Origin: Paramoeba atlantica
Lineage: Eukaryota; Protista; Discosea
Length of the DNA stretch: 64,000 nt
Direction of reading: 5' to 3'
Assembly: GCA_977017575.1 (NCBI GenBank)
Contig: CDRNVI010000156.1
Location: 62,001 to 126,000, forward strand
In this document: one piece after another, positions 9,785 through 40,876 of the stretch
Numbering within the stretch: the first letter of the stretch is position 1
Layout: every line of letters starts with the position of its first letter
Notes under the pieces: generated by a model
The model's database searches: none
What the model was told of the DNA's origin: nothing
Seen by the model: the letters and a program-made list of their open reading frames with translations, nothing else
Program-made: the position numbers and the translations under genes

Positions 9785-10293
9785 CCCAATCCCGTCAAAC
9801 ATACATTAGAAAAATGATCCTTGATTATTGATTCTTGAGGTACTTTTTGAAAAAAATTCTCTCAATTTTTCGTTTTATCGGAAGAGAAGAAATTCACGGG
9901 TTTCGTTTGCACAACACCCGAGATGAGAGACTATTTAAATTATGATAAATTAATGATTCACAAAGAACACACCATCATAAAATCAAATCCATTCAACAAA
10001 GAAATGGACGTTTAAAAAAAAGGGGCCATTTTGCGTTCGTTCCAAAAAAAGAAAGCATTTGGACCAAAAAGTGTGACGGTTGATTTTTACCCCCGAAAAG
10101 AACCAGATTGGTTTTTTTGATCCCTTTTTTGAAAAAGAGATTGAAACCAAATTTCTTGGCGGTCGTATTTTGGGAAAAAGTGCGAGAAAGAAACCGGTCG
10201 AGTCGGTTTTGAAAAGTGCGAGGGAGAAATAAGTCAAGTCGGTTTTCACACAATTTTTTCTTTTGTTTTTTTTTAATCGAACAATTTTTCAGG

Positions 10294-13200: not shown

Positions 13201-14082
13201 GTGGTCAGTGGTTTGAATCAATCTTCAATCACACGTTTGAAACCCCTTTGGGCTGATCTCAAAACCAAAGTTTGTTTTTCTTTTCATTTCTTCCAAATGT
13301 TTTCTCAAAAGAAGAAGAGGAAATCTTTTTTTTTAAAATTAACCATTTTACCATTAGTATCGAAAGAAGTTCCAGTTTTTTGACCAACTTTTGTCTCCAA
13401 ATAAGAATTTCAAAAATTATCGAAAAATTTTGCAACTGACCGAACCTCCAATCCTCCCTTGGTTAAGTCCAAAGGTTTTTTTTTTAATTTCTTTTTTTCC
13501 TTTTCTTTTGTTTTTTTTTTTGATTTTTTGGTTTTGGTGTTAGTTGAGGGAATTGCGATTTTTGTATGATGGTAATTCAACCACCAACGAATTTGGTTTT
13601 GTGAACCTCACACATTTGATGGTTTTTTTTTGATTTTCTTTTCTTTTCTTTTTCTCTTTCCCTTCTCATTTTTTTTTCGTTTGGAATAGAATATTGGAGA
13701 GTCAATTCAATCCATTTTGGATTATCAAAAACAAGAATTTGTGTTTTTGTCTCCTTGTTGTTGTGATAAGTCATTACTTCTTCATTTTCTCAATTCTCTA
13801 TCCATCCCTGAGGTCTTTTTTTTTGTTTCATTTTTTATTTATTTTGTGACGAAATACTGTTTCGTTCGTTCGAAAAATACTCATGTTCTTTAATAATAGG
13901 AGACTTGTTATCAACAATCTCTTTTAATTGTCCCACAAGGTCAATTGCCAAAAACCAGGAGATCAGATTCCCAGAAACTCTTGACCCCTCCCTTCTTATC
14001 CACTAAAAGGAGCCCCCCTTCTTACCCTCTAAAAGGAACGCCCCCGTTAGCCCGTCCAGTCAAACAGACATTAGAAAAATGA
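10294..14082 (+). CDS. C2 + permuted papain-like (C92-type) + RasGEF fusion, copy 2 (tandem paralog)
   Basis: Near-identical to 5972-9784 (several ORF-track translations are identical, e.g. 8092 vs 12389 and 8467 vs 12764). Same motifs and intron positions; the C-terminus differs slightly (...GTPPLARPVKQTLEK*). Confidence 0.82.
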
Positions 14083-17142: not shown

Positions 17143-19723
17143 TTAAAATTTTATCATCAGGGAGAGAGGACGTGGTGTGGTGGGAGGAGAAAAAGAGTTT
17201 TGGGGACTGTTTGGTTTGGGGGAAGTATGAGGAGGTCGAAGAGGAAATAATTCAATCGATTTTTGATAACACACTTCCTATTCTCAATAGATTTCAGGAA
17301 AAACAAACGACAAAAAAAAAAATTAAAAACTTGGGAAAGAAAAAAAAAAAAACCTCTGAGACAGAACGATCTTTCAACAGTTGAAGAAGAACAGTTTTGT
17401 CAATTGCCGGATCGAGTTCATAATCACATTTTTGATACCTCAAATATGATCTGATGGAAAATCCAATCTCCTGTTCTCAAATTAATTTAGAATTAACTCT
17501 TTCAAAAAAAAAAGTGAAAGGTTCCAAAAAAGAAAGAAAGAAAATAAAATCAAAACCGCCAGATGTGGCAAATTGAGGCACCCATTTTGGAAAGTTGTTT
17601 GATTTCCATCATACAAAAATCGAAGTTCCCTTAACTATATTCACACCAAAAAAAATGAATGAAATTTGTTTAGTTTTTAAAGTAAAAATCAAAAATAAAC
17701 AAAAAAACCTTTGGACTCAACCAAGGAAGTAAAGGAGGTTCAGTAAGACTCAGCACGTTTCGATATTCTCTGAAATTGAACTCTGGAAACAAGAATTGGT
17801 CCAACAATTCAAAGGTTCTTTTGTACTTTTCGAAAAAAAAGGAAGGATCAGTTTTGTGATTTGCAGCAAAATTATAAGCCAAAAAAAAGAAGAAAAGAAA
17901 AACTTTGGAATTGAGGTCAACCCACAATGGTTTTAACCGTCGAATAGATGCCTGATTCAAACCACTCACAACCGCTGCTACCCCCTCAAAATTGCGCATC
18001 TGTGGTGAATGGTGTCAGAAAAGATGGTACAAATGATATATATTTTTTGTTTTGTTTTGTTGTCGACAATAATAATAAAAAAAAAAGAGGAACCTTCCAG
18101 AATCGTTTTGCGAGTTTGATCGAAAAAATCAAGGTTGGGCGTCTTGCCGCTTCCTCACACGAAAGAATCGATTCAACAACTATTTCAGAGAGTCGATTGA
18201 AGTTTCCAATCATCTTCATCACATTAGGAGCTTTTTGGTATCGTTCCTCTTTCTGTGGTTACAAAAAAAATTAAGTACATTTGGATTCGAATCCCCCCAA
18301 GAAAGAGACATCGTTTTACATTCGAAAAGAAGAAGAACTATTCTTATACCTCCCAAGCTCCATCATGAAATTCTGAATATTGAATATTTTGATAAGATTG
18401 AAACATAATCGATGTTAGCGATTGTGCAACTTGAAGAACAGTTCCACACTTCATCAAATTCGTCCCTTTCCAAGCCTAATTTTGGGAGTTGTGAGAAGGG
18501 TTGTTTTCCTTCCTTTTGGAGGAAAAAAAAGAAAAAAAGAACCAAAATATGTGAAAAAGGAACTTCCAAAGAGTCAATTAAAAGATTCATTTCCCTTTTT
18601 TAAATAAAAATCATTGAATTGTCGAAAAGAAGGAGAAAACGAATGAAAGAAACACACAAAAAAAAGAAACCTGGTAAGAGAAGGGTAAAACGATCGATAA
18701 TACTTTCCAAATATTTTGTTCCAGATTTGAAGAATCTCGACAATGTCTTCCTTTTTTGAATTTGAAACTTCTTCATCAATCATTTGCTCCATCTTTCGTA
18801 GTAATTGAATCTGTCCCAATCGTTTTAGAGAGAAAATTGAAGAAGACTCTTTTTCCAAAGAAAAAAAAAGTCGAAACTGAATCAATTTGAACTTTCTCAA
18901 ATCCAATAAAGAAAAACTCCTTCTGTTCAAGAGACATTTGAAGTAAACTTTCGATGATCTGTTCATAATCAGTCTTTCCAAAGAGATGTTCTTCACAACG
19001 AAAAGAGTTCAAAGGTGAAGCAGAAGAAGTTGTAAAACCATGACTATACGTGTTTGATTTTGGTGATAATGAGAAAGAAGATGAAGAAGAAGATCCAAAA
19101 GGTTGAAGAGTTGGAGAAGTATGATTTCGTGGCGATTGGAATCTCTTTGCTGAAAACGGATTGAAGAAGAGATCATCTTCATCGTCGTCGATTCCAAGAT
19201 CCCCCGTGAATTTCTGAGTTTCTTTCTCTTTCAAACTCTGGGAGGAAAGAGGACTTTTATATCCCTTGAAGAGAAAAGAATTTCTTTTTAACTTTTTTGT
19301 TTTTGGAGTTGGAGGAGACATTGAGGACTGACGAGAGACCGAGGCCGGAGGAGAGACCGCTGAGGAACGTAGAGAAGAAGATTTCGAAGAAATGAAAGAG
19401 ATCTCAGGGGATGTTGGAGAAGATGATGAATGAGAACGAGGTGATTGAGGCAAAGGGAGAGATGGAGGAGAACTTGGAGGAGAATTTGTTGGAGAACTTG
19501 TTGTCGGAGGAGAAATAGGAGAACGAGGAGAACGTCGAAGAGATTTTGACTTTTTTGCCAACCCTCCTCCTGCCCCTGCTGGCGAACTTTTCTCTGTTCC
19601 TGGAAGGTGATCCTTGAAACAAGGTTCTGGGAGGGAATCACTCTTGATATTCTCTTGTTCTTGTTTCTTTTTTTTCTCTCTTCGTTTTGAGAAAAATTTT
19701 GGGAAAGTGGCATTTTTTTCCAT
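17143..19723 (-). CDS. RasGEF family protein (Ser/Pro-rich N-terminus, REM-like, CDC25)
   Basis: HLFGKTDYEQIIESLLQM..FFIGFEKVQID, GNFNRLSEIVVESILSCEE, NFEGVAAVVSGLNQASIRRLKPLW, FNFREYRNVL..PPLLPWLSPK, EVCYQKSIELFP. Intron positions match the other paralogs. Confidence 0.86.
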
Positions 19724-19874: not shown

Positions 19875-22800
19875 TTATTTCTTCTTGTCTGTTGGTTCTG
19901 TTGGTTCTGTTGGTAAATAAAAATGGGCACGGCCGTTTGAACAAGGATTCTTCAAAACCCCCAACTTCTGACAAGAAGAACAAAAATATTGTTGACAACC
20001 TAAACACGCAGCTCGATTTAAAGAATCTGCCTCAACGCAACATCGAGAACAGGGCACTGAACATTTTTCGATGGCTTGTCTGTTGGTTGGTTCTGTTGGT
20101 TCTGTTGGTTCTGTTGGTTCTGTTGGTAAATAATGATGGGCTCGCCCATTTGAACAAGGATTCTTCAAAACCCCCAACTTCTGACAAGAAGAACAAAAAT
20201 ATTGTTGACAACTTAAACATGCAGCTCGATCTAAGGAATCTGTCCCAACACAACATCGAGAACATGGCACTGAACATTTTTCGATGGCTTGTCTGTTGGT
20301 TGGTTCTGTTGGTTCTGTTGGTAAATAATGATGGGCTCGTCCATTTGAACAAGGATTCTTCAAAGCCCCCAACTTCTGACAAGAAGAACAAAAATATTGT
20401 TGACAACCTAAACACACAGCTCGATCTAAAGAATCTGTCCCAACGCAACATCGAGAACATTGCAAAGCTGGTAAATAATGATGGGCGAGTCCGTTCGAAC
20501 AAGGATTCTTCAAAACCCCCAACTTCTGACAAAAAAAACAAAAAGAATGTTGACAAGCTGAACAGATTGCTCGACTGAAAGAGTTTGTCTCAACACAACA
20601 TCGTGAACATTGTACCTTACATTCGAGGGTCACTTCCTTCTGACCTCCCTCCACTAAACAAGCATTGCGTACCAGAGAACCTGATTTCCTCTTATTCCTC
20701 TTTTCTGTTTAAAAAAAAATGAGTGGGAGAGAGTGGGTGGAAATCATAAAAAAAAAATGACCTGTACTCAGTCTTTTTAAGTCTTTTCTTGATGTTTTCT
20801 TTATGAGGCGTTTGGGAGTGGAAATATCAGAATTCCCTTCCCCCAGTGGTAAATGGGAGATATCAATGTACTCTTGTTTGACCGGAGTTCCTTCAATGGA
20901 GGGATTCTCCCCTTCCTCTCCCACTTCTTTTTCTTTTTCTCTTTTCCTTTTCTCTTCATCCTCTCCCTGAGGTGTAGGAGGAGTTTTGGGAGCGAAAGGA
21001 GAGCCAGAGAATTGTGGAGAGTTATCAGGAAGGGTGTGAGAAGCGAGATTGGGGGTATTTTGAAGAGAAGGAGTACGGGGGTACAACTCCAAAGATTTTT
21101 GATAACATTCATCCTATTCCATTTTCAATTCAGAAAAAATCAATATTTATGTGGGAAATAAAACAGGTCATCAGAATCACAAGGTGAAAGAGACCTTGGA
21201 GACAGAACGATCTTTCAATAATTGAAGAAGAGCAGTTTTGTCAATTGTTAGTTTGAATTCATATTCATAAGATTGGTATTTGAGGAATGATCTAATCGAA
21301 GATCCAATCTCCTATTAGTCATAATTTTTAGAATAACTCTTTGAAAATAATAAAAATAGAAAAAAAAAAAAAGAAGACCATCAGGTGTGGCAAATTGATA
21401 AAGCCAGTTTTTAATGTTGTTTGGTTTCCATCATACAAATATCGAAGTTCCCGTAACTGTTCACCCAGAACAAATGTAAATATCATAAAAATCCCAAAGA
21501 TCAGAAAAAAAAAACCTTTGGACTCAACCAAGGATGTAAAGGAGGTTCAGCAACACTCAGTGCATTTCGATATTCTTTGAAATTTCCTTCTGGTGATATC
21601 AGTTGGTTCAAGGTTTCAAACGTTCTTTTGTGCTTTTTGAAAAAAAATATTAATTTTTTGATTTCATTAAATCAGAAAAAGAAAAATAAACTCTGGAGCT
21701 GAGGTCAATCCACAATGGTTTTAATCGTCGAATAGGTGCTTGATTCAAACCACTCATAACTGCTGCTACCCCTTCAAAATTGTTCATCTGTGGTTTAATA
21801 AAATAGAAAGTGTAAATTGTTTGTCTTTTTTCAGATTTAGTTTTTTGTTTGGAGATAGACAAAAAAAAGGGACCTTCCGAAGTTGTTTTGCTAATTTAAT
21901 GAGATAAACCAACATTGGACGACGTGCTGCCTCTTCACATGAAAGAATTGATTCAACAACAATTTCAGAGATTCGATTGAAGTTGTGTGTCATTGTCATC
22001 ACATTTGGAGATTTTTGATATTTTTCTCCTTTCTGGGTGAGTAAAAAAGATAATAAAACAAAAAAACATTAATCATTATTTGAAAAACTAAAATGAAATG
22101 AATCAATTAACCTCCCAAGCTCCATCATAAAACTCTGAAAATTGAAGATTTTGATAAGATTGAAACATAATTGATGTCAATGATTGTGCAACTTCACCAA
22201 AAGTCCCATACATCATCAAATTTGTTCCTTTCCATGCCTATTTTTTGAACTGAGTTTCAAAAAAGAAGTTTCAAAAATTCAAAATGAAAAAAAGAAACCA
22301 AAATTTGTGAAAAAGAAACTTCCAAAGTGTTTAATAATGTTTTCATTCGACTATTGTTTTCATCAATTTAGAAGGTGATTGATGAGGAAAATAAGAGTAA
22401 AAGGGTAAAAAGAAAGATAAACCTTGCAACAGAAGGTAAGAATGATTGATAATATTTTCCACATGTCTTGTTCCAGAGTTGTAAAACTCTCACAATTTCT
22501 CCTTTTTTTGTCGTATCTTCTTTTTCTTCAATCATTTGTTCCATCTTTTCTAACAATTGAATCTGTGTGTGTGTGGGGAGGAGGAGGAGGAGGGGGAGAT
22601 AATAAATTGGTTGTGAGTCAAATTTGCGAAAATTGAAAAAGAAAAGTGAAAAACAGAAAAAAAACTAACTGGATCAATTTCAAATTTCTCAAAACCAACA
22701 AAAAAGAAATCTTCTTCTTCAGGAGGCATCTGGAGCAAACATTCAACGATCTTTCCATACTCATCCTTTTCAAAAAGATGATCTGTACTACAAAAGGATT

Positions 22801-23440
22801 TCTTCTTTGGGTGATGTATCGCGTCACTAATCGTTTTAGATCTTGGTGTTAAACCAAAAGGACGAAGAGAAGGACCTTCACTTGGAGTTTTGCAAAATCG
22901 GGGGGTCATTGGAGATCGACAGAGCGTCTTTTGGCTTTCTCCTCCTGTTGTCTCTCCTGTTGTTGATGACAATGGGCTCCTCTTTATCTTTGTGGGTTGA
23001 GTTTGTGAGAAAGAAACACTTGCAAAAAAAGAACGAGGAGAAGAGGGTGTGGGTGATGATTCAGAAGAGGGTGAAGGCGTCTGAACAGTAGTGGTGGGTG
23101 ATTGAGAGTGAGAGGATGAAGAAGGAAGAGGGTTCAATAAGATAGGTGTTACTTTAGTGGGAGGAATTGGAGAGGTAAGGGAAGGGTGCAAAGGGCGTGG
23201 AGAAGATTTAGTTTGAGTAGTTGGCAGAGGATCCTGGGGAGGTGGTTCACGAGAGCTATTGGATGGAGAGTCAGTCCTGAGTGGTGGGCATGATGATACG
23301 TGGTTGAGAATTGACTCGTAATCTGAGAAAGATTGGCTCCTTCTGCTCCGAGTCCGAATGCCATTCCTGCTGCTATTCCTGCTGCTGTCCTTCCGTTTTA
23401 AAAGGAAGACCTTTGGCCCAGGACTTTTTCTTGACTCCAT
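19875..23440 (-). CDS. RasGEF with 4 C-terminal Cys7-His (ZZ/IBR-like) zinc-finger repeats, array copy 1
   Basis: Starts MESRKSPG and has the full REM-like/CDC25 exon set. The exon DECYQKSLELYPRTPSL (homologous to the terminal EVCYQKSLELxP exon of the other paralogs) continues through a phase-1 intron into EKRNKRKSGSLVRNACLVEGGQKEVTLECKVQCSRCC... and four repeats (ORF 19875-20654). Confidence 0.83.
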
Positions 23441-24091
23441 CAATCGAGGCGGTGGGCAGTGGGGAAAAACTGAAAGTGATTCAATGACCGTCTATTTGTG
23501 GTTTGGAACGCTGAAAAAAACTCCCAAAAAATCAAACGGGGCGGGAAATAATAACCGGTTTTCAAATAACTCCTTCCAAAAATAGTCAAAATAAACCCAA
23601 ATTGCCCAAATAAGAGAAAACGATAAACCCAAAGAAATGTTTTTTTCGGGGTTGTTTTTGTTTTGTTTTCGTTTTTTTGTTTGTCCGCTTTTTTTTCCTT
23701 TTTTTCCTCCAATTTCTCTCCAATAATTTCGTTCCATGGGTTCCTCTTTGAAATGGATGCGCACAGTTTGAAGTTGGTTGAGGGGCGCACTCAGAGACTC
23801 AACACCCTAGAGCGAGGAATTGTGGGATATCAAATGAAGTGAAGAGAGACGAGTGGGGGAGTTGGAGGAGTTGGAGGAGTTGGAGGAGAGGTTGAGACTG
23901 CAATGCTGGGGAGAAACACTTGAAATGAATCAAGTTGTTATCTTTCACAAATACATTCTTGATATTTTTCGCTCTGATAAAACTGTAAAAGGGGTGACCT
24001 ATTATTCTTGTCAAAAAACAGAAAGGAATAAAAAAAAACAAATGGATCACTCAAGAACCTCGGAGGCAACCGCACCACCAGAGGAGGTGAG

Positions 24092-24224
24092 ACCCCAATT
24101 GGATCAATGCAACTTCATTCAATAAATCAAGCACTTTCTGAGTAATTGGAGGACTCCTGCTTGGTTTCTCTCTCTCTTCTCTCTTCTCTCTCTTCCTTAT
24201 TTCCCTTTCTCTCTTCTCTCTCTA
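24092..24224 (+). pseudogene. Fragment of the kexin-like gene (exon 39356-39427 plus following intron) with a nonsense change
   Basis: ACCCCAATTGGATCAATGCAACTTCATTCAATAAATCAAGCACTTTCTG matches 39356 onward. GGG CAA is changed to GAG TAA, and homology runs into the intron (CTTCCTTATTTCCCTT...CTCTATTT). Confidence 0.85.
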
Positions 24225-27200
24225 TTTCTTCTTGTCTGTTGGTTCTGTTGGTAAATAAAAATGGGGACGTCCATTTGAACAAGGATTCTTCAAAATCCCC
24301 AACTTCTGACAAGAAGAACAAAAGTATTGTTGACAACCTAAACATGCAGCTCGATCTAAAGAATCTGCCTCAACGCAACATCGAGAACATTTTTCGATGG
24401 TCACTCCGATCTGATCATCTTGCACCGGAGAAACTGAAGAAGATTTTTTGTGGATCAGAGAACCTGATTTCTTCTTCTTCCTCTTTTCTGTTAAAAAAAT
24501 ATGAGTGGGAGAGAGTGGGTGGGAATCTTAAAAAAAAAAATGACCGACTGTTGTATTCTTGTCTGTTGGTTCTGTTGGTTCTGTTGGTTCTGTTGGTAAA
24601 TAATGATGGGCTCGTCCATTTGAACAAGGATTCTTCAAAACCCCCAACTTCTGACAAAAAAAACAAAAAGAATGTTGACAAACTGAACAGATTGCTCGAC
24701 TGAAAGAGTTTGTCTCAACGCAACATCGTGAACATTGTACCTTACATTCGAGGGTCACTTCCTTCTGACCTCCCTCCACTAAACAAGCATTGCGTACCAG
24801 AGAAGATTTCCTATTCTTCCTCTTATCTAAAAAAATAAATAAATATGAGTGGGAGAGAGTGGGTGGGAATCAATAAAAAAAAATGACCTGCTGGACTCCT
24901 TTTCTGTGTGAGGCGTTTTGGAGCGAAAATATCAGGATTCTCTTCCCCCAGTGGTAAAAGGGGGATATCAATGTACTCTTGTTTTACTGGAGTTCCTTCA
25001 ATGGAGGGATTCTTCCCATCCTCTCTCTGAGGTGTAGGAGGAGTTTTGGGAGCGAAAGGAGAGGCAAAGAATTGTGGAGAGTTATCAGGAAGGGTGTGAG
25101 AAGCGAGATTGGGGGTGTTTTTAAGTGAAGGGGTACGGGGGTACAAATCCAAAGATTTTTGATAACATGCATCCTATTCCATTTTCAATTCAGAAAAAAT
25201 CAATCTTTATGTGGGAAACAAAACAGGTCATCAGCATCACAAGGGGTGGATCAAAAAAAAAAGAGACCTCAGAGACAGAACGATCTTTCAACAATTGAAG
25301 TAGAACAGTTTTGTCAATTGTTAGTTTGAATTCATATTCGTAAGATTGGTATTTGAGGAATGATCTGATCGAAGATCCAATCTCCTATTCATCATACTCA
25401 TCAGAATAACTCTTTGAAAATAATAAAAATTGAAAAAAAAAAGAAGACCATCAGGTGTGACAAATTGATCTCACCAGTTTTTAATGTTGTTTGGTTTCCA
25501 TCATACAAATATCGAAGTTCCCGTAACTATTCACCCACAATTTAATATCATATTTAAGAATGATTTCTTTCAAAGATCAGATCCCCTCCCCCTCCCAAAA
25601 AAAACAAACCTTTGGACTCAACCAAGGAAGTAAAGGAGGTTCAGCAACACTCAGTGCATTTCGATATTCTTTGAAATTTCCTTCTGGTGACATCAGTTGG
25701 TCCAAGGTTTCAAACATTCTTTTGTGCTTTTTGAAAAAAAAAATATCAATTTTTTGATTTAGAAGGGACTCATTAAATCAGAAAAAGAAAAATAAACGCT
25801 GGAGCTGAGGTCAACCCACAATGGTTTTAATCGTCGAATAGGTGCTTGATTCAAACCACTCATAACTGCTGTTGCCCCTTCAAAATTGTTCATCTGTGGT
25901 TTAATAAAATAGAAACTATAAATTGTTTGTCGTTTTTCAGATTTAGTTTTTGTTTGGAGAGAGACAAAAAAAAGGGACCTTCCAAAGTTGTTTTGCTAAT
26001 TTGATGAGATAAACCAACATTGGACGACGTGCTGCCTCTTCACATGAAAGAATCGATTCAACAATGATTTCAGAGATTCGATTGAAGTTGTGTGTCATTG
26101 TCATCACATTTGGAGCTTTTTGATATTTTTCTCCTTTCTGGGTGAGTAAAAAAACAAAAAAAAACATCAATCAATATTTGAAAAACTAAAATGAAATGAA
26201 TCAATTAACCTCCCAAGCTCCATCATAAAACTCTGAAAATTGAAGATTTTGATAAGATTGAAACATAATTGATGTCAATGATTGTGCAAGTTCACGAAAA
26301 GTCCCATACATCATCAAATTTGTTCCTTTCCATGCCTATTTTTTGAACTGAGTTTCAAAAAAGAAGTTTCAAAAATCAAAATGAAAAAAAGAAACCAAAA
26401 TTTGTGAAAAAGAAACTTCCAAAGTGTTTAATAATGTTTTCATTCGACTATTGTTCTCATCAATTTAGGGGGTTATTGATGAGGGAAATAAGAGTAAAAG
26501 GGTAAAAAGAAAGATAAACCTTGCAACAGAAGGAAAGAATGATTGATAATATTTTCCACAGATCTTGTTCCAGAGTTGTAAAACTCTCACAATTTCTCCT
26601 TTTTTTGTCGTATCTTCTTCTTCTTCAATCATTTGTTCCATCTTTTCTAACAATTGAATCTGTGTGTGTGTGGGGAGGAGGAGGAGGAGGGGGAGATAAT
26701 AAATTGGTTGTGAGTCAAATTTGCGAAAATTGAAAAAGAAAAGTGAAAAACAGAAAAAAAATTAACTGGATCAATTTCAAATTTCTCAAAACCAACAAAA
26801 AAGAAATCTTTTTCTTCGGGAGACATCTGGAGTAAACATTCAACGATCTTTCCATACTCATCCTTTTCAAAAAGATGATCTGTACTACAAAACGAATTCT
26901 TCTTTGGGTGATGTATCACGTCACTAATCGTTTTTGATATTGGTGTTAAACCAAAAGAACGAAGAGAAGGACTTTCAGTTGGACTTTTGTAAAATCGGGG
27001 GATTGGAGATCGACAGAGTGCCTTTTGGCTTTCTCCTCCTGTTGTCTCTCCCATTGTTGACCACAATGGGCTCTTCTTTCTTGTTACGGGTTGAGTTTGT
27101 GAGAAAGAAACACTTGCAAAAAAAGTACGAGGAGAAGAGGGTGAGGGTGATGAGTCAGAAGAGGTCGAAGGCGACCGAACAGTAGTGGTGGATGATCGAG

Positions 27201-27531
27201 AAAGACCGGATGAAGAAGGAAGAGGGTTCAAGATAGGTGTTCCTTTTGTGGGTGGAATTGGGGAGGTAAGGGAAGGATGCAAAGGGCGTGGAGAAGATTT
27301 AGTTTGAGTAGTTGGTAGAGGGTTCCGGGGAGCTGGTTCGTGAGGGCTTTGGGATGGAGAATCATACCCGAGGAGTGGTGGGCATGATCCGTGGTTGAGA
27401 ATTGGCTCGTAATTTGAGAAAGATTCGCTCCTTCTGCTCCTTCTGCTCCCTGTCCTGCTCTGAGTCTTGCTGTTGCTGTTCTTGCGATTTAAAAGGAAAA
27501 CCCTTGGCCCAGGACTTTGTGTTGACTCCAT
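24222..27531 (-). CDS. RasGEF with 2 C-terminal Cys7-His repeats, array copy 2
   Basis: Starts MESTQSPGPRVF with the same exon set as copy 1. The two repeats lie in separate exons (ORFs 24528-24779 and 24222-24425) separated by a duplicated intron. Confidence 0.82.
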
Positions 27532-27944
27532 CGATCGTGGGGGTGGTGGGGAGGCGGGGTGAACTGAAAAGTGAACGAATGACTTTTTCTCTGAGAAGCC
27601 AAAAATAAATAAAAAAACTCCTTCCAAAAATAGTCAAAATAATCCCAAATTGCCCAAATAAGAGAAAACGAGAAATCCAAATAAAGAAATGTTTTTTTCG
27701 GGGTTGTTTTTGTTTCATTTTCGTTTTTTTGTTCGTCCGCTTTTTTTTTTCTTTTTTTTTTGATCTCGAATAATATCTTTTGAATTTTGTTCAATTGGGG
27801 CACTCTTTGAAATGGATGCGCACAGTTTGAAGTTGGTTGAGGGGCGCACTCAGAGACTCGACACCCTAGAGCGAGGAGTTGTGGGATATCAAATGAAGGG
27901 AAGAGAGATGAGGGGGGAGTTGGAGTTGGAGGTCTCTCTTCTCT

Positions 27945-30900
27945 CTATTTCTTCTTGTCTGTTGGTTCTGTTGGTAAATAATGATGGGCTCGCCCATTTG
28001 AACAAGGATTCTTCAAAACCCCCAACTTCTGACAAGAAGAACAAAAATATTGTTGACAACTTAAACACGCAGCTCGATTTAAAGAATCTGCCTCAACGCA
28101 ACATCGAGAACATGGCACTGAACATTTTTCGATGGCTTGTCTGTTGGTTGGTTCTGTTGGTTCTGTTGGTTCTGTTGGTTCTTCTGTTGGTAAATAATAA
28201 TGGGGACGTCCATTTGAACAAGGATTCTTCAAAATCCCCAACTTCTGACAAGAAGAACAAAAATATTGTTGACAACCTAAACACGCAGCTCGATTTAAAG
28301 AATCTGTCCCAACGCAACATCGAGAACATTGCAAAGCTGGTAAATAATAATGGGGACGTCCGTTTGAACAAGGATTCTTCAAAACCTCCAACTTCTGACA
28401 AGAAGAACAAAAATATTGTTGACAACCTAAACACGCAGCTCGATTTAAAGAATCTGCCTCAACGCAACATCGAGAACATGGCACTGAACATTTTTCGATA
28501 GTCACTCCGTTCTGCTCTCCTTGCACTGAAGAAACTGAAGAAGATTTTTTGCGGATCAGAGAACCTGATTTCCTATTCTTCCTCTTTTCTGTTAAAAAAA
28601 AATGTGAGTGGGAGAGAGTGGGTGGGAATCATAGAAAAAATGACCTGTACTCAGTCTTTTTAAGTCTTTTCTTGATGTTTTCTTTGTGAGGCGTTTTGGA
28701 GCGGAAATATCAGGATTCCCTTCCCCCAGTGGTAAAAGGGGGATATCAATGTACTCTTGTTTTACTGGAGTTCCTTCAATGGAGGGATTCTTCCCATCCT
28801 CTCCCACTTCTTTTTTTTTTTCTCTTTTCCCTTTCTCTTCATCCTCTCCCTGAGGTGTAGGAGGAGTTTTGGGAGCGAAAGGAGAGCCAGAGAATTGTGG
28901 AGAGTTATCAGGAAGGGTGTGAGAAGCGAGATTGGGGGTATTTTTAAGAGAAGTCCGGGAGTACAAATCCAAAGATTTTTGATAACATGCATCCTATCAT
29001 TTTCAATTCAGAAAAAAACAATCTTTATGTGGGAAACAAAACAGGTCATCAAAAAAAAAGAGACCTCAGAGACAGAATGATCTTTCAACAATTGAAGTAG
29101 AACAGTTTTCTCAGTTGTTAGTTTGAATTCATATTCGTAAGATTGGTATTTGAGGAACGATCGAATCGAAGATCCAATCTCCTATTCATCATACTCATCA
29201 GAATAACTCTTTGAAAATAATAAAAATTGAAAAAAAATAGAAAAAAAAAAGAAGACCATCAGGTGTGGTAAATTGATCTCACCAGTTTTTAATGTTGTTT
29301 GGTTTCCATCATACAAATATCGAAGTTCCCGTAACTATTCACCCACAATTTAATATCATATTTAAGAATGATTTCTTTCAAAGATCAGATCCCCTCCCCC
29401 CCCAAAAAAAAACAAACCTTTGGACTCAACCAAGGAAGTAAAGGAGGTTCAGCAACACTCAGTGCATTTCGATATTCTTTAAAATTTCCTTCTGGTGACA
29501 TCAGTTGGTTCAAGGTTTCAAATGTTCTTTTGTGCTTTTTGAAAAAAAAAATATCAATTTTTTGATTTAGAAGGGACTCATTAAATCAGAAAAAGGAAAA
29601 TAAACTCTGGAGCTGAGGTCAACCCACAATGGTTTTAATCGTCGAATAGATGTTTGATTCAAACCACTCATAACTGCTGTTGCCCCTTCAAAATTGTTCA
29701 TCTGTGGTTTAATAAAATAGAAACTATAAATTGGTTGTCTTTTTCAGATTTAGTTTTTTGTTTGAAGATAGACAAAAAAAAGGGACCTTCCGAAGTTGTT
29801 TTGCTAATTTGATGAGATAAACCAACATTGGACGACGTGCTGCCTCTTCACATGAAAGAATCGATTCAACAATGATTTCAGAGATTCGATTGAAGTTGTG
29901 TGTCATTGTCACCACATTTGGAGCTTTTTGATATTTTTCTCCTTTCTGGGTGAGTAAAAAAACAAAAAAACATTAATCATTATTTGAAAAATTTAAAAAA
30001 ATGACCACAATTTTTTGTAAAAAGGGGCAAGGGGAGGGGAAATCAATTAACCTCCCAAGCTCCATCATAAAACTCTGAAAATTGAAGATTTTGATAAGAT
30101 TGAAACATAATTGATGTCAATGATTGTGCAAGTTCACGAAAAGTCCCATACATCATCAAATTTGTTCCTTTCCATGCCTATTTTTTGAACTGAGTTTCAA
30201 AAAAGAAGTTTCAAAAACCAAAATGAAAAAAAGAAACCAAAATTTGTGAAAAAGAAACTTCCAAAGTGTTTAATAATGTTTTCATTCGACTATTGTTCTC
30301 ATCAATTTAGAAGGTGATTGATGAGGGAAATAAGAGTAAAAGGGTAAAAAGAAAGATAAACCTTGCAACAGAAGGAAAGAATGATTGATAATATTTTCCA
30401 CAGATCTTGTTCCAGAGTTGTAAAACTCTCACAATTTCTCCTTTTTTTGTCGTATCTTCTTCTTCTTCAATCATTTGTTCCATCTTTTCTAACAATTGAA
30501 TCTGTGTGTGTGTGGGGAGGAGGAGGAGGAGGGGGAGATAATAAATTGGTTGTGAGTCAAATTTGCGAAAATTGAAAAAGAAAAGTGAAAAACAGAAAAA
30601 AAATTAACTGGATCAATTTCAAATTTCTCAAAACCAACAAAAAAGAAATCTTTTTCTTCGGGAGACATCTGGAGTAAACATTCAACGATCTTTCCATACT
30701 CATCCTTTTCAAAAAGATGATCTGTACTACAAAACGAATTCTTCTTTGGGTGATGTATCACGTCACTAATCGTTTTTGATATTGGTGTTAAACCAAAAGA
30801 ACGAAGAGAAGGACTTTCAGTTGGACTTTTGTAAAATCGGGGGATTGGAGATCGACAGAGTGCCTTTTGGCTTTCTCCTCCTGTTGTCTCTCCTGTTGTT

Positions 30901-31349
30901 GATGACAATGGGCTCCTCTTTATCTTTGTGGATTGGGTTCGTGAGAGAGAAACTTTAGAAAAAAAAGTACGAGGAGAAGAGGGTGTGGGTGATGATTCAG
31001 AAGAGGGTAAAGGCGACCGAACAGTAGTGGTGGGTGATTGAGAGTGAGTGGATAAAGAAGGAAGAGGATTCAATAAGAGAGGTGTCCCTTTTTTAGTGGG
31101 AGGAATTGGAGAGGTAAGGGACGAAAGGCGTGGAGAAGATTTCGTTTGAGAAGATGGCAGAGGGTCCTGGGGATCTGGTTCCTTTCCGAGTGGTGGGCAT
31201 GATGATATGTGGTTGAGAATTGACTCGTAATCTGAGAAAGATTGACTCCTTCTGCTCCGAGTCCGAATGCCATTCCTGCTGCTATTCCTGCTGCTGTCCT
31301 TCCGTTTTAAAAGGAAGACCTTTGGCCCAGGACTTTTTCTCGACTCCAT
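27945..31349 (-). CDS. RasGEF with 3 C-terminal Cys7-His repeats, array copy 3
   Basis: ORF 30489-31349 (MESRKSPG...HLFEKDEYGKIVECLLQM), CDC25 exons, and terminal ORF 27945-28526 with three repeats. Confidence 0.83.
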
Positions 31350-32002
31350 CGATCGTGGGGTGGGCGGTGGGCGGTGGGTTGCGGTGGGCGGTGGGTGGTG
31401 TGAGAAACCTAAAAAGTGAACGAATGACTTTTTGGAACGAAAATAAAAAATAAAAACGGAGAAACGGAAAAATAAAAGACCGAAAAAATAAAAAGTGGCG
31501 GGGAAAAAAACCTCTCACAAAGAAAAGATCCAAAATTGCCCAAATTTGCGCTCGTTGCCCAAATAAGAGAAAACGACAAATCAAATAAAGAAATGTTTTT
31601 TTCGTTTTTTTTTTTTTCTCGAATAATTTCTTTTGAATTTTGTTCAATGGGTTCCTCTTTGAAATGGATTCGCACAGTTTGAAGTTGGTTGAGGGGCGCA
31701 CTCAGAGACTCGACACCCTAGAGCGAGGAATTGTGGGATATCAAATGAAGTGAAGAGAGACGAGTGGGGGAGTTGGAGGAGTTGGAGGAGTTGGAGGAGA
31801 GGTTGAGACTGCAATGCTGGGGAGAAACACTTGAAATGAATCAAGTTGTTATCTTTCACAAATACATTCTTGATATTTTTCGCTCTGATAAAACTGTAAA
31901 AGGGGTGACCTATTATTCTTGTCAAAAAACAGAAAGGAATAAAAAAAAACAAATGGATCACTCAAGAACCTCGGAGGCAACCGCACCACCAGAGGAGGTG
32001 AG

Positions 32003-32117
32003 ACCCCAATTGGGTCAATGCAACTTCATTCAATAAATCAAGCACTTTCTGAGTAATTGGAGTATTCCTGCTTGGTTTCTCTCTCTTCCTTATTTCCCTT
32101 TCTCTCTTCTCTCTCTA
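32003..32117 (+). pseudogene. Second copy of the kexin-like exon/intron fragment
   Basis: Same sequence as 24092-24224 with the same GAG TAA nonsense change. Confidence 0.85.
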
Positions 32118-35100
32118 TTTCTTCTTGTCTTCTGTTGGTTCTGTTGGGAGATAATGATGGGCTCGTCCGTTTGAACAAGGATTCTTCAAAACCCCCAACT
32201 TCTGACAAGAAGAACAAAAATATTGTTGACAACTTAAACACGCAACTCGATTTAAAGAATCTGCCTCAACGCAACATCGAGAACATTTTTCGATCACTCC
32301 CATCTGATCACCTGGCACCGAAGAAACTGAAGAAGATTTTTTGTGGATCAGAGAACTTGATTTCCTATTCTTCCTCTTTTCTGTTAAAAAAAAATATGAG
32401 TGGGAGAGAGTGGGTGGGAAACATAAAAAAAAATGACCTGTACTCAGTCTTTTTAAGTCTTTTCTTGATGTTTTCTTTGTGAGGCATTTTGGAGTGGAAA
32501 TATCAGGATTCCCTTCCCCCAGTGGTAAATGGGAGATATCAATGTACTCTTGTTTTACTGGAGTTCCTTCAATGGAGGGATTCTTCTCATCCTCTCCCGC
32601 TTCTTTTACTTCTTCTTTTTCTCTTTTCCCTTTCTCTTCATCCTCTCCCTGAGGTGTAGGAGGAGTTTTGGGAGCGAAAGGAGAGCCAGAGAATTGTGGA
32701 GAGTTATCAGGAAGGGTGTGAGAAGCGAGATTGGGGGTATTTTTAAGAGAAGTCCGGGGGTACAAATCCAAAGATTTTTGATAACATGCATCCTATTCCA
32801 TTTTCAATTCAGAAAAATCAATCTTTATGTGGGAAACAAAACAGGTCATCAGCATCACAAGGGGTGAATCAAAAAAAAAAGAGACCTCAGAGACAGAACG
32901 ATCTTTCAACAATTGAAGTAGAACAGTTTTGTCAATTGTTAGTTTGAATTCATATTCGTAAGATTGGTATTTGAGGAATGATCTGATCGAAGATCCAATC
33001 TCCTATTCATCATACTCATCAGAATAACTCTTTGAAAATAATAAAAATTGAAAAAAAATAGAAAAAAAAAAGAAGACCATCAGGTGTGGTAAATTGATCT
33101 CACCAGTTTTTAATGTTGTTTGGTTTCCATCATACAAATATCGAAGTTCCCGTAACTATTCACCCACAATTTAATATCATATTTAAGAATGATTTCTTTC
33201 AAAGATCAGATCCCCTCCCCCCCCAAAAAAAAACAAACCTTTGGACTCAACCAAGGAAGTAAAGGAGGTTCAGCAACACTCAGTGCATTTCGATATTCTT
33301 TAAAATTTCCTTCTGGTGACATCAGTTGGTTCAAGGTTTCAAATGTTCTTTTGTGCTTTTTGAAAAAAAATATTAATTTTTTGATTTAGAAGGGACTCAT
33401 TAAATCAGAAAAAGAAAAATAAACGCTGGAGCTGAGGTCAACCCACAATGGTTTTAATCGTCGAATAGATGTTTGATTCAAACCACTAACAACTGCTGTT
33501 GCCCCTTCAAAATTGTTCATCTGTGGTTTAATAAAATAGAAACTATAAATTATTTATCTTTTTTCAGGTTTGAAGATAGACAAAAAAAAGGGACCTTCCG
33601 AAGTTGTTTTGCTAATTTGATGAGATAAACCAACATTGGACGACGTGCTGCCTCTTCACATGAAAGAATCGATTCAACAACGATTTCAGAGATTCGATTG
33701 AAGTTGTGTGTCATTGTCACCACATTTGGAGCTTTTTGATATTTTTCTCCTTTCTGGGTGAGTAAGAAAACAAAAAAACATTAATCATTATTTGAAATAT
33801 TTTTGTAAAAAAGGGGCAAGGGGAGGGGAAATCAATTAACCTCCCAAGCTCCATCATAAAACTCTGAAAATTGAAGATTTTGATAAGATTGAAACATAAT
33901 TGATGTCAATGATTGTGCAAGTTCACGAAAAGTCCCATACATCATCAAATTTGTTCCTTTCCATGCCTATTTTTTGAACTGAGTTTCAAAAAAGAAGTTT
34001 CAAAAACCAAAATGAAAAAAAGAAACCAAAATTTGTGAAAAAGAAACTTCCAAAGTGTTTAATAATGTTTTCATTCGACTATTGTTCTCATCAATTTAGA
34101 AGGTGATTGATGAGGGAAATAAGAGTAAAAGGGTAAAAAGAAAGATAAACCTTGCAACAGAAGGAAAGAATGATTGATAATATTTTCCACAGATCTTGTT
34201 CCAGAGTTGTAAAACTCTCACAATTTCTCCTTTTTTTGTCGTATCTTCTTCTTCTTCAATCATTTGTTCCATCTTTTCTAACAATTGAATCTGTGTGTGT
34301 GTGGGGAGGAGGAGGAGGAGGGGGAGACAATGAGTAAAATTTGCGAAAATCGAAAAAGAAAAGTGAAAAACAGAAAAAAACTAACTGGATCAATTTCAAA
34401 TTTCTCAAAACCAACAAAAAAGAAATCTTCTTCTTCAGGAGGCATCTGGAGTAAACATTCGACGATCTTTCCATACTCACCTTTTTCAAAAAGATGATCT
34501 TCACTACAAAAGGAATTCTTCTTTGGGCGATGTACCGCTTCACTAACCGTTTTAGATCTTGGTGTTAAACCAAAAGGACGAAGAGAAGGACCTTCAGTTG
34601 GACTTTTGCTAAATCGGGGGGTTATTGGGAGAGATTGACGGAGCGCCTTTTGGCTTTCTCTTCTTGTTGTCTCTCCCGTTGTTGATGACAATGGGCTCCT
34701 CTTATTCCTTGAGGATTGGGTTTGTGAGAAAGAAACATTTGAAAAAAAAGAACGAGGAGATAAGGGTATGGGTGATTCAGAAGAGGGTAAAGGCGACTGA
34801 GTCGTAGTGGTGGGTGATTGAGAGTGAGAGGATGAAGAAGGAAGAGGATTCAATAAGAGAGGTGCTACTTTTTTAGTGGGAGGAATTGGAGAGATAAGGG
34901 ACGAAAGGCGTGGAGAAGATTTCGTTTGAGAAGATGGCAGAGGGTCCTGGGGAGCTGGTTTGCGAGGGCTTTTGGATGGAGAGTCAGTCCCGAGTGGTGG
35001 GCATGATATGTGGTTGAGAATTGATTCGTAATCTGAGAAAGATTGGCTTCTTCTGCTCCGAGTCCGAGTGCTATTCCTGCTGCGATTCCTGTTGCTGTCC

Positions 35101-35150
35101 TTCCGTTTTAAAAGGAAGACCTTTGGCCCAGGACTTTTTCTCGACTCCAT
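32115..35150 (-). CDS. RasGEF with 1 C-terminal Cys7-His repeat, array copy 4
   Basis: ORF 34278-35150, CDC25 exons, and terminal ORF 32115-32771 with a single repeat ending PTEPTEDKKK*. Confidence 0.83.
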
Positions 35151-35559
35151 CGATCGTGGGATGGGGCGGTGGGTGGCGGTGGGCGGTGGGCGGTGGGTGG
35201 TGTGGGAAACCTAAAAAGTGAACGAATGACTTTTTTGGAACAAAAATAAAACAAAAATAAAAAATAGGGCAAACGGAAAAAAGTTGTCCGAAAAATAAAA
35301 ATGGAGAAACGAAAAAACAAAACAGGAAAAAACGACTTCTCAGAATCCAAAACTATCCCAAAATTGCCCAAATATGAGAAAAAGACTAACCCAAATAAAG
35401 AGATGTTTTTTCGGGGTTGTTTTTGTTTCGTTTTCGTTTTTTTGTTCGTGCGTTTTTTGAAAGGTTATTGAAAGGTTGATTGAAACAGTTTCTCTTCTTT
35501 CTCTCGCCACAGAAGAGAGTCAGCGCCCAGCCAAAAGAGAAGAAGAAGAAAGAAGAAGA

Positions 35560-37123
35560 ATGTTTTTATTGTTTGTCTTATTATTATTGAGCGGGTTTGA
35601 GAGTGAAAAGAAAAATGGGTCTGTTTTTGTTTTGGGGGATATTTTGAATGATCCTTTGTATTTGCGTCAGTGGCATTTTTTTTATTCCAATACTTTTGGC
35701 ATTAATGCTCAGGTTTTTTTTTATATTTTTATTTCTATTTTATTTATTCATTTATTCATTTTATTATTTTTATTTTTTTCTCTTTCTCTCAGTTCTAAAA
35801 TCAAAAACAAAAACAAGGGAGCTTGGCAATTAGGAATGACAGGACATGGGGTTTCGGTGGGTGTTGTTGTTCCTCAAGTTTCTTCTCTTAATTTTGGTTT
35901 CTTTTTTTTTTTTTAATTTTAATTTTATTTTTATTTTTCCTTGTGATTTTATTCCATTTGATTTTAAAACGATCTGATTTTTTTTTTTTTCGCCCCCTCT
36001 TTCTTTTTGTCTCTCTCCTCTCTCTCTCTTTTCTTCCTCTCTTCCCTCCTTTCTCTCTCTTCTCTTTCTTCTCTCTCTCCTCTCCTCTCTCTCTCTTCTC
36101 TCTCTTCTCTCCTTCAGATTTATCACATTATGAGCACGAAAGTTCTTTTGTCAGTCCATCGCAAGAAGGAGATCGCGAGTTTGCAGAGGAAGGAACTGGA
36201 AGTTCTTCTTTTCTTTTCCCTTTTCTTTTTCTCTCTCCTTTCTCTTTTGTGAGATAAAGAGAACTTCTTTTTATCTTTTTTTCTCTCTTCTCACAACAAA
36301 AAAAATAGTGGCGGCAGTGATTGCAGCAAAGGCTGGAAACCATTTTTGTAGTGTCGGAATTGCCTACCAAGGTCGCCTTTTCTCTTTTCTCTCTCTCTCA
36401 CTCTTTTCTCTCTCTCTCCCTTTCTCTCATTTTTTTCTCTCATTTTTTTCTCTCTTTCACTTTCTCTTTTCTCTCTTTGTCGCTTTCTTCAAAATCTGAG
36501 ATTATTTTTTATTTTTTAGCTAATTTAATTTTGAGAGAACTTGAGTTCTATAATGCTGTTGATTATAGTGGTTTGCATTTGTTTCTTCTCTTTCTTCTCT
36601 TTCTTCTCTCTTCTCTCTTCTCTTTTCTCTCTCCTATTTTTCTCTTCTTCTCTCCTTCCTTTCTCTTTCCTTCTACCATTTTTAATATTTTTTTGATAGA
36701 CGCGATCCCTGATGCTCTTGCTTTTTATCAGGTCCTCTTTCTCTCTCTCTCTCCTCTCTTTCCTTTCCCCCTTTTCTCTCCCTTTCTCTTTTCTCTTTTC
36801 TCTTTTCTCTCCTCTCTTTTCCTCTTTTCCTCTTTAACAAATAAAGCCATTTTATAGAAAGTCGATGTCAATTTTATTGGTTTATCTGTTCCTCCTATTC
36901 TAGGAATTGCCCGTTATGACGTTTATTTTTATTTATTATTTTTTCTTTTGTTTTTTCTTTATAAATTCATTATTATTTATTATTTTATTATTATTTTATT
37001 ATTATTTTTCATTCATTTTTATGATTATTTTTCTTTTGTTGATTTTTCTTTTCAGAGACGATTAAGTGCAATTGTTAATTTGATTACGAGGCTCGGCAGA
37101 TCAGTTTTCTTTTCTTTTTCTTT

Positions 37124-37154
<31 letters not shown>

Positions 37155-38924
37155 GTCTTTCTCTCTTTAATGAAAAATAATAGACTTTGGGAGGATTAAT
37201 AGTGGCAAAGGCTCCATCTGGTAATTGTAATTATGATGGTTTTATGAATGATTATGCGGTTTTCTTCTTCTTCTTCTCTCTCTCTCTCTCTTTCTCTTTC
37301 TCTTTTCTCTTTTCTCAACCAGAAAAACAGGTGATGATAGCAAAAGGAGTAAATAGAGCTGGAAAACAAGTTGATGATGTTTCATGTCCTGCTGTTCTTT
37401 CTACTGTTTCTTCTGACGTTTTCCTTTCTTTCTCCTCTTTCTTCTCTTTCTTCTCTTCTCTTTTCTTTTCTTCTCTTTCTCTCTTTATTTCTTTTTTCTC
37501 TCTTCTCTCTAAGTTTTATAAACAGCTGTTAACGACAATCGATGTATCTTGTACTGAAAAAACTCTTAATGGAACATCGGTTCAATTTTTCTCAGAATAA
37601 ATCCAGAAAGAAAAGAGAGAGAAGGAAAGGGGGTGAAAGAAAAGAAGAAAAGAGAAGAAAAACATATTTTAAAAATAAAATAAAATGAGAATAATAATAA
37701 GAATGAATAATAAAAGAAATAAGAATGAATGAATAATAATAATAGGGGGCAAGTGCGACCATGGCAGGAATTGCTGCTTTGATTTTAGAGGTTCCATTCT
37801 CTCTTCTCTCTCTTCTCTCTTCTCTCTTCTCTCTTCTCTCTTCTCTCTTCTCTCTCTCTCTTCTCTCTCTCTCTTTTCTCTCTCTCTCAAAAGCAATAAA
37901 AAAGGCAAACCCAAATTTAAAATGGCACGAAGTACAAGAAATTTTCATCGAAGCGTCTCAAATGATCGATGTTCAAGATCCTGGTTGGCAATTTAATGGT
38001 GCTTCTAAACCTTATCATCATCAATATGGGTTTGTTTGTTTTGTTTGTTTTGTTTGTTTTGTGAGAGAGGGGAAGGAGGAGAAAAAGAAAAAGAATAGAT
38101 TTTTTAAAAAAATATCTAAAAGAATAAAAATGAATGAATAAATATTAAAAATAAAAATAAAAATAAAAAAAAAAAATAAAAAAAAGATTTGGGCTTGTGG
38201 AGGCGGGAGATGCGGTAAAACATGCGATTTATTGGCCTGTTCCTACTCTCCGTCTTTATCAATCTTTTGAAAGGTTTTTTTTCAATTTTTTTATTTTTAT
38301 TTTTTATTTTTTTATTTTTTTATTTTTTTATTTTTTTATTTTTTTATTTTTTTATTTTTTTATTTTTTTATTTTTTTATTTTTTTATTTTTTTATTTTTT
38401 ATTTTCATTTATTTTCATCTTTCTTTTCGACTTTCTTTTCTCTTTCTTTCAAATAATTTTTTGTATGATAGTTTCACAAAGAGTTTCTTCATTCAAGATC
38501 ACGATCTTGCTTCTTTTCCTATTGCCGTCAGGTCTCTCTTTTATTTCTTTATTTATTTCTTTCTTATCATTTTCTAATATTTGTTTAATAGTAATTTCCC
38601 TCAACAAGTTCAACACATTGGGGTTTCTTTTCTTCTGTTTTGAATATCTTTTTGTTCTCCAATAAATAAACAAACAAATAAATAAACATATAAATAAATA
38701 AAAATAGGTATCAGTAGTGATAGAACATGAGAATCCTGGTGATCTTGAGAATATTTTATAAATAAATAAATAACTAAATAAATAATAATATAAATAAATA
38801 ATAACATTATTTTAAATAAATAATATAAATAATTTTAATAATTTTAATAAAATAAATAAAAATAGGTATCAGTAGTGATAGAACATGAGAATCCTGGTGA
38901 TCTTGAGATTACTTTATAAATACA

Positions 38925-38957
<33 letters not shown>

Positions 38958-40670: not shown

Positions 40671-40876
40671 ATAAGATCTTAAAAAACATGCTAAAAAGAA
40701 AATAAAAAAAACTTAAAAAAAGAGTTCTTTTTTTTCGGGGTTGTTTTTGTTCCGTTTTCGTTTTTTTGTTCTGTCGCTTTTTTATATCCGTTTTTCGTTC
40801 TTTTTTTGGTTTGTCGCTTTTGTGTGTTTTGTTTCGTTTGTTTTTTTTTTTTTTTCTCCCTCACCCTCTTTCAAAT

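Follow-up and report, generated by a model that had tools for sequence, protein, structure and literature searches.

The DNA analysed here, a 64-kb (64,000-nucleotide) stretch of contig CDRNVI010000156.1 from Paramoeba atlantica, hereafter the window, carries four tandem paralogous genes, A to D, which encode Ras guanine nucleotide exchange factors (RasGEFs) and each of which bears at its 3' end a group of Cys-rich finger repeats, ~47 residues per unit. The G+C content of ~36% and the short, T-rich introns mark the window as eukaryotic DNA. Genes A-D are units of 3.1-3.7 kb that share 90-96% DNA identity. The model of gene A was built by hand, and its exon borders were carried to C and D through a four-way alignment. 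The models of all four genes are complete, with GT-AG introns and no internal stops; C and D share the splice sites of A, and B needs one extra intron. In gene A, the ten introns, 57-107 nt long, are all GT-AG and the coding sequence is one open frame of 938 codons.

Pieces of the RasGEF profile (PF00617) match the gene A exons in profile order (positions 1-28, 29-82, 57-128 and 113-152), three of them above the gathering cutoff of 23.1 bits (32.8, 34.6 and 25.9 bits), and the C-terminal rest of the domain was recognised by eye in exons 8-10. Over the PF00617-matching exons, genes B-D show 97% identity. The N-terminal exon is Ser/Pro-rich and matches no Pfam family; the REM partner domain (RasGEF_N, PF00618) gave no Pfam match on the exon 2 piece from the window and a weak one (E 0.012) on L002, a second contig from assembly ERZ24900291. 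Across A-D, DNA identity is 97.2% in the GEF exons (gap-free), 94.7% in introns, 90% in the N-terminal exon and 87% in the finger exon, a contrast which suggests that the GEF core is either homogenised or strongly constrained and that both termini may evolve fast. The introns, T-rich and 56-107 nt in length, have an unusually weak donor consensus, G/GT followed by T or C (GTCATT, GTCCCT, GTTTTT; G/GTYNNT), and a YAG acceptor.

A six-frame regular-expression search of the 64 kb for C-x2-C...C-x2-C...C-x2-C...C...H returned exactly ten matches to this eight-ligand pattern, all on the minus strand, in groups of four, two, three and one (genes A, B, C and D, respectively; Table 1). A looser six-Cys pattern revealed no further copies in the window, nor did tblastn with the array as query detect any outside 19.8-35.3 kb. 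Mean identity among the ten copies is 86%, with 67-96% identity to the first copy, and C5, C8, C9, C20, C23, C28, C31, C41 and H47 are invariant in all ten. Adjacent copies are joined either directly, through ALQ, which gives a 150-nt period, or through (TEP)n, encoded by a 9-nt microsatellite, followed by NRQAIEKCSVP, which gives periods of 195 and 213 nt. Tandem Repeats Finder (TRF) reports all three periods (150, 195 and 213 nt) in gene A, where A1 and A2 are joined by ALQ, and a 150-nt period with 95% matches in gene C. The repeats of gene B lie in separate exons, and its count of two is conditional on splicing of a second 57-nt intron: were this splice skipped, the protein would stop after B1. 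Two open reading frames (ORFs) run antisense across finger arrays; they are read as by-products of the repeat, without support as genes.

Table 1. Features of the window (position 1 is its first nucleotide)
Feature	Position	Strand	Description
Gene A	19875-23440	-	11 exons, 938 aa, 4 repeats; manual model
Gene A, exons 1-6	23440-22670, 22562-22423, 22350-22320, 22237-22112, 22032-21874, 21787-21692	-	
Gene A, exons 7-11	21632-21516, 21456-21379, 21311-21195, 21113-20762, 20704-19875	-	
Gene A, finger intron	20705-20761	-	phase 1, 57 nt, GTCATT...AACAG
Gene A, repeat A1	20478-20609	-	
Gene A, repeat A2	20328-20459	-	
Gene A, repeat A3	20133-20264	-	
Gene A, repeat A4	19923-20051	-	
Gene B	24222-27531	-	12 exons, 820 aa, 2 repeats in two exons
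Gene B, finger intron	24827-24887	-	61 nt, homologous to that of A
Gene B, exon 11	24545-24826	-	carries B1
Gene B, duplicated intron	24488-24544	-	
Gene B, exon 12	24222-24487	-	carries B2
Gene B, repeat B1	24603-24734	-	
Gene B, repeat B2	24261-24389	-	
Gene C	27945-31349	-	11 exons, 865 aa, 3 repeats in terminal exon 27945-28588
Gene C, finger intron	28589-28644	-	56 nt, homologous to that of A
Gene C, repeats	28350-28478, 28200-28328, 27981-28112	-	
Gene D	32115-35150	-	11 exons, 749 aa, 1 repeat in terminal exon 32115-32380
Gene D, finger intron	32381-32437	-	57 nt, homologous to that of A
Gene D, repeat	32154-32285	-	
Gene E	17146-19723	-	diverged RasGEF paralogue, same exon plan as A-D; 17146 is a provisional limit
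Further RasGEF paralogues	3397-5312, 7897-9522, 12194-13621, 57195-58550, 61479-63473	+	
Further RasGEF paralogues	47064-48857, 50844-52466, 54448-55098	-	
Antisense ORF across gene A array	19892-20578	+	228 aa
Antisense ORF across gene C array	27812-28501	+	229 aa
Protein-kinase ORF	41583-43106	+	
Protein-kinase ORF	45558-46757	+	
TC-rich microsatellites	36000-37900		dense
A/T-rich arrays	to 39900		

In each of the four genes the fingers are separated by a short intron from the preceding tail exon, which stays open up to a conserved donor (ACAG/GTCATT); the acceptor before the finger exon is AACAG or TTTAG. The tail exons (352, 286, 349 and 355 nt) differ in length by multiples of 3. Splicing yields an open frame in each of the four genes, even though the introns of B (61 nt) and C (56 nt) are not multiples of 3; consequently, the tail and finger exons of B and C occupy different genomic frames and come into frame only once spliced. 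In genes A, B and C no Met codon occurs from the acceptor to the first repeat, so that these finger exons cannot start a protein. In gene D the finger intron is itself open in frame: tail, intron and finger form a single ORF of 218 aa, identical to protein P0003 of a public collection.

An independent case comes from L002, in which one uninterrupted ORF (4925-6538) encodes five fingers together with a coiled coil and positions 135-180 of the RasGEF profile (31.9 bits, cutoff 23.1); the preceding ORFs carry RasGEF positions 28-73 and 65-112. The assembly that yielded L002 also contains a near-identical copy of the window locus. The GEF domain of L002 gave no tblastn match to the window GEF at a cut-off of 1e-3; it is thus too diverged to be detected in this way, and the RasGEF-finger combination is either old or arose more than once. 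Two more features of L002 lie at 2028-2783 and 9293-9988: an upstream ORF of its RasGEF gene holds two finger-like units, so that this gene may have fingers at both ends, and an RVT_1 reverse-transcriptase ORF lies downstream. In a related gene, protein P0026 reads intron-free across exons that are split in the genomic contig L005 and thus behaves as if transcript-derived; it places an upstream domain and fingers on one message. Judged from genomic and protein sequence, the fusion is well supported, with splicing in vivo presumed. The original prediction had described the repeat consensus, the (TEP)n linkers and ALQ junctions, the 4/2/3/1 counts and an in-frame 3' exon position of the repeats in RasGEF genes, and all of these hold; so does its remark that separate small ORFs conceal the fusion, inasmuch as prokaryote-style ORF calling divides the tail from the fingers.

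A profile of the ten window copies was searched against 1.84 billion representative proteins (E<=1e-3), among which only 24 carry the finger. At least two of these matches, P0012 and P0021, resemble repetitive false positives and were excluded by eye; the retained matches and the window copies make up an alignment of 57 repeats, 26-87% identical to the query. They follow the pattern C-x2-C-x9-13-C-x2-C-x4-C-x2-C-x9-C-x4-6-H, and an L-K-N-P-C...G..H motif is conserved. Exactly eight columns never vary (C5, C8, C20, C23, C28, C31, C41 and H47, i.e., CCCCCCCH); N39 and G44 hardly do, many repeats start with C-x-R-C, and an aromatic residue often precedes the fifth Cys. For orthologue-like repeat pairs, the ratio of nonsynonymous to synonymous changes (pN/pS) is 0.13-0.28.

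AlphaFold2 run on the 57-repeat alignment gave a model with a mean predicted local distance difference test (pLDDT) score of 84.9, in which hairpin strands 17-20 and 26-28 flank C20/C23 and a helix, 29-32, spans C28/C31. A knuckle, a hairpin with a second knuckle and a helix that starts from the third pair is the layout of RING-like binuclear treble clefs (PMC4506424). With eight ligands in four pairs and the predicted hairpin and helix, the finger model fits this class best. A Foldseek search with the model gave no significant match (best E 0.18 in PDB and 0.09 in BFVD), and the neighbours listed from both are predominantly RING, FYVE, ZZ and PHD fingers. At the sequence level, the repeat profile found nothing below E 2.5 among all PDB chains, and Pfam scans of the arrays, single repeats and homologues gave no family at threshold; the arrays had no B-box match at E<=0.01.

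Weak neighbours were sought repeat by repeat (n=57, E<=10), with the 25 most often matched Pfam families listed. The ANCHR-like B-box (PF22586) leads the list, touching 28 of 57 repeats (best E 4.4e-4), followed by DUF4637 (15 repeats, 0.012), IBR_1 (14, 0.035), zf-AN1 (13, 9.7e-4) and zf-B_box (PF00643; 13, 3.8e-3); a window repeat scores 8.9 bits against a B-box cutoff of 27. A likeness to MYND/HIT fingers, suspected by eye, was dropped: zf-MYND touches five of the 57 repeats, with a best E of 0.017. FYVE domains are defined by R(R/K)HHCR around the third and fourth cysteines and by WxxD. Both motifs are absent from the finger, in which the columns around C20-C23 are variable and neither basic nor His-rich, and the FYVE family (PF01363) is matched by four of the 57 repeats (best E 0.029). 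ZZ (PF00569) matches no array or single repeat and is absent from the 25 listed families, and its ligand signature is CCCCCCHH rather than CCCCCCCH; that of the B-box, CC/HCCCCHH, differs as well (PMC4506424). IBR matches are sub-threshold (PF01485 in six repeats, best E 0.061; PF22191 in 14, 0.035), and no RING turned up in any carrier protein. Since the finger has neither the ligand signature of ZZ or of the B-box nor the FYVE basic motif, it can be filed in a fold class only. The assignment in the original prediction to a two-zinc, ZZ/IBR-like module thus stands at the level of the fold class, and the eight invariant ligands fit two zinc ions; membership in ZZ or IBR does not. Its suggestion of a possible new family gains from the searches, which turned up neither a Pfam family nor a significant PDB relative by sequence or fold, the Foldseek comparison that it had proposed included (the ZZ finger of p62 at E 0.37). 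Sequence patterns and the predicted model together support a new family among RING-like treble clefs of the binuclear kind.

Nearly all carriers stem from metagenome assemblies; the sole named source is Paramoeba aestuarina (MMETSP0161/EukProt), in the P0009 cluster. RasGEF is a partner above cutoff in window genes A-D and in L002. The other partners are all matched weakly, short of the Pfam gathering cutoffs: RasGAP in P0017, which has two N-terminal fingers (E 1.9e-4, 21.8 bits vs 28.3), a RasGAP-like region in P0026, which has three C-terminal fingers (E 0.026, 14.8 bits), GRAM in P0018 (E 0.0016, 18.7 vs 23.6) and a cNMP-binding domain in P0019 (E 0.0033, 17.8 vs 27.5). The neighbourhoods of P0005, P0007, P0014 and P0016 gave no Pfam context, and tblastn upstream of the fingers in L005 found only P0026-like exons.

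The arrays bear traces of how their copy number changed. The first repeats of A and B are of one diverged type, which C and D lack: they differ from each other by 6 nt and from all other repeats by 17-27 nt. Between the two finger exons of gene B the 57-nt intron recurs, and the first of these exons closes with a fusion that joins the normal C-terminus (TEPTDK...) to the end of the tail exon; the fused end and the second intron point to duplication of an intron-plus-exon unit. The gene B finger exon is bounded by phase-1 introns on both sides, an arrangement compatible with shuffling. A sister contig, L001 (ENA ERZ24900291 ctg3904l), is 99.98% identical to window positions 24594-42771 (18 kb) and has in gene B a third, frameshifted repeat, with a 2-bp and a 3-bp deletion (L001 18169-18320 vs window 24594-24737), opposite which the window shows a gap of exactly one 150-column unit. 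By coordinate mapping L001 appears to end inside the gene A array, and the window is not a simple sub-range of it. The extra unit is either a true polymorphism or an assembly error. The TRF periods of 150 and 195/213 nt and the one-unit difference between assemblies bear out the earlier claim of a changing copy number, with changes by unit-length events.

Elsewhere in the window, tblastn found at least nine further RasGEF paralogues or fragments, making the window a cluster of ~13, in which only A-D have fingers. Gene E is 50-76% identical to gene A at the amino acid level across the GEF exons and has its ATG at 19723; its limit at 17146, where the last open frame with GEF homology stops, is provisional and does not mark an established end of the gene. 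The two regular-expression patterns and tblastn located no finger repeat in gene E, a result that has no complete exon model behind it and does not exclude a further exon downstream. The two protein-kinase ORFs (Pkinase E ~1e-44 each, 67% mutual identity) lie between RasGEF sub-clusters; the best named relatives of a kinase ORF are an MMETSP transcript and Physarum, at 38-40% identity. The TC-rich microsatellites and A/T-rich arrays lie directly upstream of gene D. Scans for tRNAs and Rfam families in the window found nothing.

On balance, we favour, with somewhat better than even confidence, the explanation that A-D are four recently duplicated, intact RasGEF genes with tandem, lineage-restricted binuclear fingers, which grow and shrink by whole units and form a multivalent docking array. 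The fingers would have been joined to the GEF through the phase-1 intron; the array would then have expanded and shrunk through duplication and deletion of units within the exon and, in gene B, through duplication of intron and exon together. Each finger is predicted to adopt a RING-like treble clef, with ligand pairs 1+3 and 2+4 each holding one zinc; zinc binding itself is proposed from the eight ligands. As a multivalent module, the array may dock to a protein partner or to a membrane surface and thereby place or cluster Ras regulators, and the number of repeats may set avidity, by a logic that parallels that of the RasGRP C1 domain.

Several observations weigh against this explanation. The copy numbers derive from long-read metagenome assemblies, and the sister contig has indels and ends in the gene A array, so some copy-number differences between assemblies could be assembly error. 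The metagenome contigs queried with the gene A array and P0001 gave no relative and no transcript for the locus; a scan of viral contigs likewise found no relative. Across all repeat pairs together, pN/pS stands at 0.55, and in some pairs it lies above 1 on the basis of very few substitutions. No hidden Markov model or structural match is significant, and the fold class is argued from ligand spacing, predicted secondary structure and sub-threshold neighbours; the suggested cross-brace pairing is drawn from predicted secondary structure and fold class, not from coordinates. The docking and avidity function is proposed by analogy, and an E3-ligase-like or a lipid-binding role, both live alternatives, is just as hypothetical.

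The competing explanations differ in which part of this proposal they dispute. If the arrays were small genes of their own or untranslated 3' sequence, with the RasGEF proteins ending before them, the separate ORFs given by prokaryote-style calling would be expected, as would the stop that an unspliced reading of A-C meets inside the intron, and the splicing is not backed by cDNA; this is very improbable, however, given that no ATG precedes the first repeat in A-C, that the finger frame follows intron length (61 and 56 nt) between conserved GT...AG sites, that the next gene is only ~150-780 nt away, that L002 holds a RasGEF end and fingers within one ORF and that P0026 is, like a cDNA, intron-free over exons split in L005. 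A partial artefact in the 4/2/3/1 series, produced by collapse or expansion of near-identical 150-213-nt units during long-read metagenome assembly, would account for the one-unit difference in gene B of L001, the 2-bp and 3-bp indels there and the apparent end of this contig inside the gene A array. We regard it as unlikely: the repeats of one array differ by 4-24 nt of 141 and are distinguishable, all arrays of the window are in frame, and collapse could not produce the qualitative differences, namely type-I first repeats, confined to A and B, and an extra intron, confined to B.

Other alternatives concern what the finger does. Its nearest weak neighbours are RING, B-box, IBR, ZZ and AN1 domains, and many fingers of these types act in ubiquitin pathways (PMC4506424); the finger could be a RING/B-box/IBR-like E3 module or a reader of ubiquitin or N-degrons that couples Ras activation to turnover. 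Yet every match is sub-threshold, RBR (RING-between-RING) context is missing, the ligand signature is unlike that of each family, and the partner domains (RasGEF, RasGAP-like, GRAM, cNMP) are signalling domains, none from the ubiquitin system, which leaves this role decidedly doubtful. A FYVE- or C1-like membrane-lipid binder that recruits the GEF to membranes, as RasGRP uses its C1 finger, has slightly better prospects and is still improbable: the CARP2 FYVE domain aligns and the first six ligands are spaced as in FYVE, the window repeats are mildly basic (counted from the ten-copy alignment) and a weak GRAM match co-occurs, but the FYVE motifs are absent and PF01363 touches only four of the 57 repeats. 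A broader version of the docking explanation, which we offer tentatively and think less probable than not by a wide measure, is that the finger is a Ras-pathway targeting domain of one amoeboid lineage, shuffled as a phase-1 exon onto RasGEFs and RasGAPs alike to bring both to a shared docking site.

With these genes, the catalogue gains a zinc-finger family and a RasGEF architecture that had not been described; literature searches turned up no account of a RasGEF carrying a finger array of this kind. Repeat turnover at the level of exons and of units is visible inside one gene cluster. If the finger is a targeting domain shared across the pathway, rapid gain and loss of repeats would be a heritable dial of signalling strength; if it is a docking module common to RasGEFs and RasGAPs, its 1 to 5 repeats would offer a countable handle on valency versus localisation. 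The locus also carries a warning: prokaryote-style ORF calling of eukaryotic metagenome contigs splits such proteins and masks their domain combinations.

Comparison with known systems places the finger near several families and inside none. Like B-boxes (PF22586, PF00643), it would be a RING-like treble clef, binuclear and ~40-50 residues long, with a C-x2-C...C-x2-C-x4-C-x2-C core; unlike them, it has no repeat at the gathering score, aligns only centrally (profile positions 10-27 of 39 for a window repeat) and occurs without the RING or coiled-coil context of TRIM proteins. The ZZ finger of p62/SQSTM1 (PDB 5YPB) has eight ligands and similar spacing and size (51 columns, TM-score 0.50/0.54); however, the Foldseek E value is not significant, CEBP_ZZ is the only ZZ family among the 25 listed (six of 57 repeats, best E 0.037), and the terminal pair is H...H in ZZ and C-x4-6-H in the finger. 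The FYVE domain of CARP2 (PDB 1Y02) gave a local Foldseek fit of 1.4 Å over 29 columns with 31% identity, and FYVE domains have their first six cysteines at identical spacing; the last pair is C...H after 9 residues in the finger and C-x2-C after a long insert in FYVE. The IBR and RING2 domains of RBR ligases (PF01485, PF22191; ARIH2) share the C-x2-C-x4-C-x2-C segment, with weak hmmsearch matches to ARIH2 (E 2.5), and differ in their overall ligand pattern and in their adjacent RING1/RING2 domains. A functional analogue, not a relative, is RasGRP (REM-CDC25-EF-C1), in which a CDC25-type GEF is followed by a small C-terminal two-zinc Cys-rich targeting module. The order of GEF and Cys-rich module is similar in the two systems, but C1 has another fold and an HCCCCHCC signature, binds diacylglycerol and is single, whereas the finger described here is RING-like by prediction and comes in 1-5 tandem copies.

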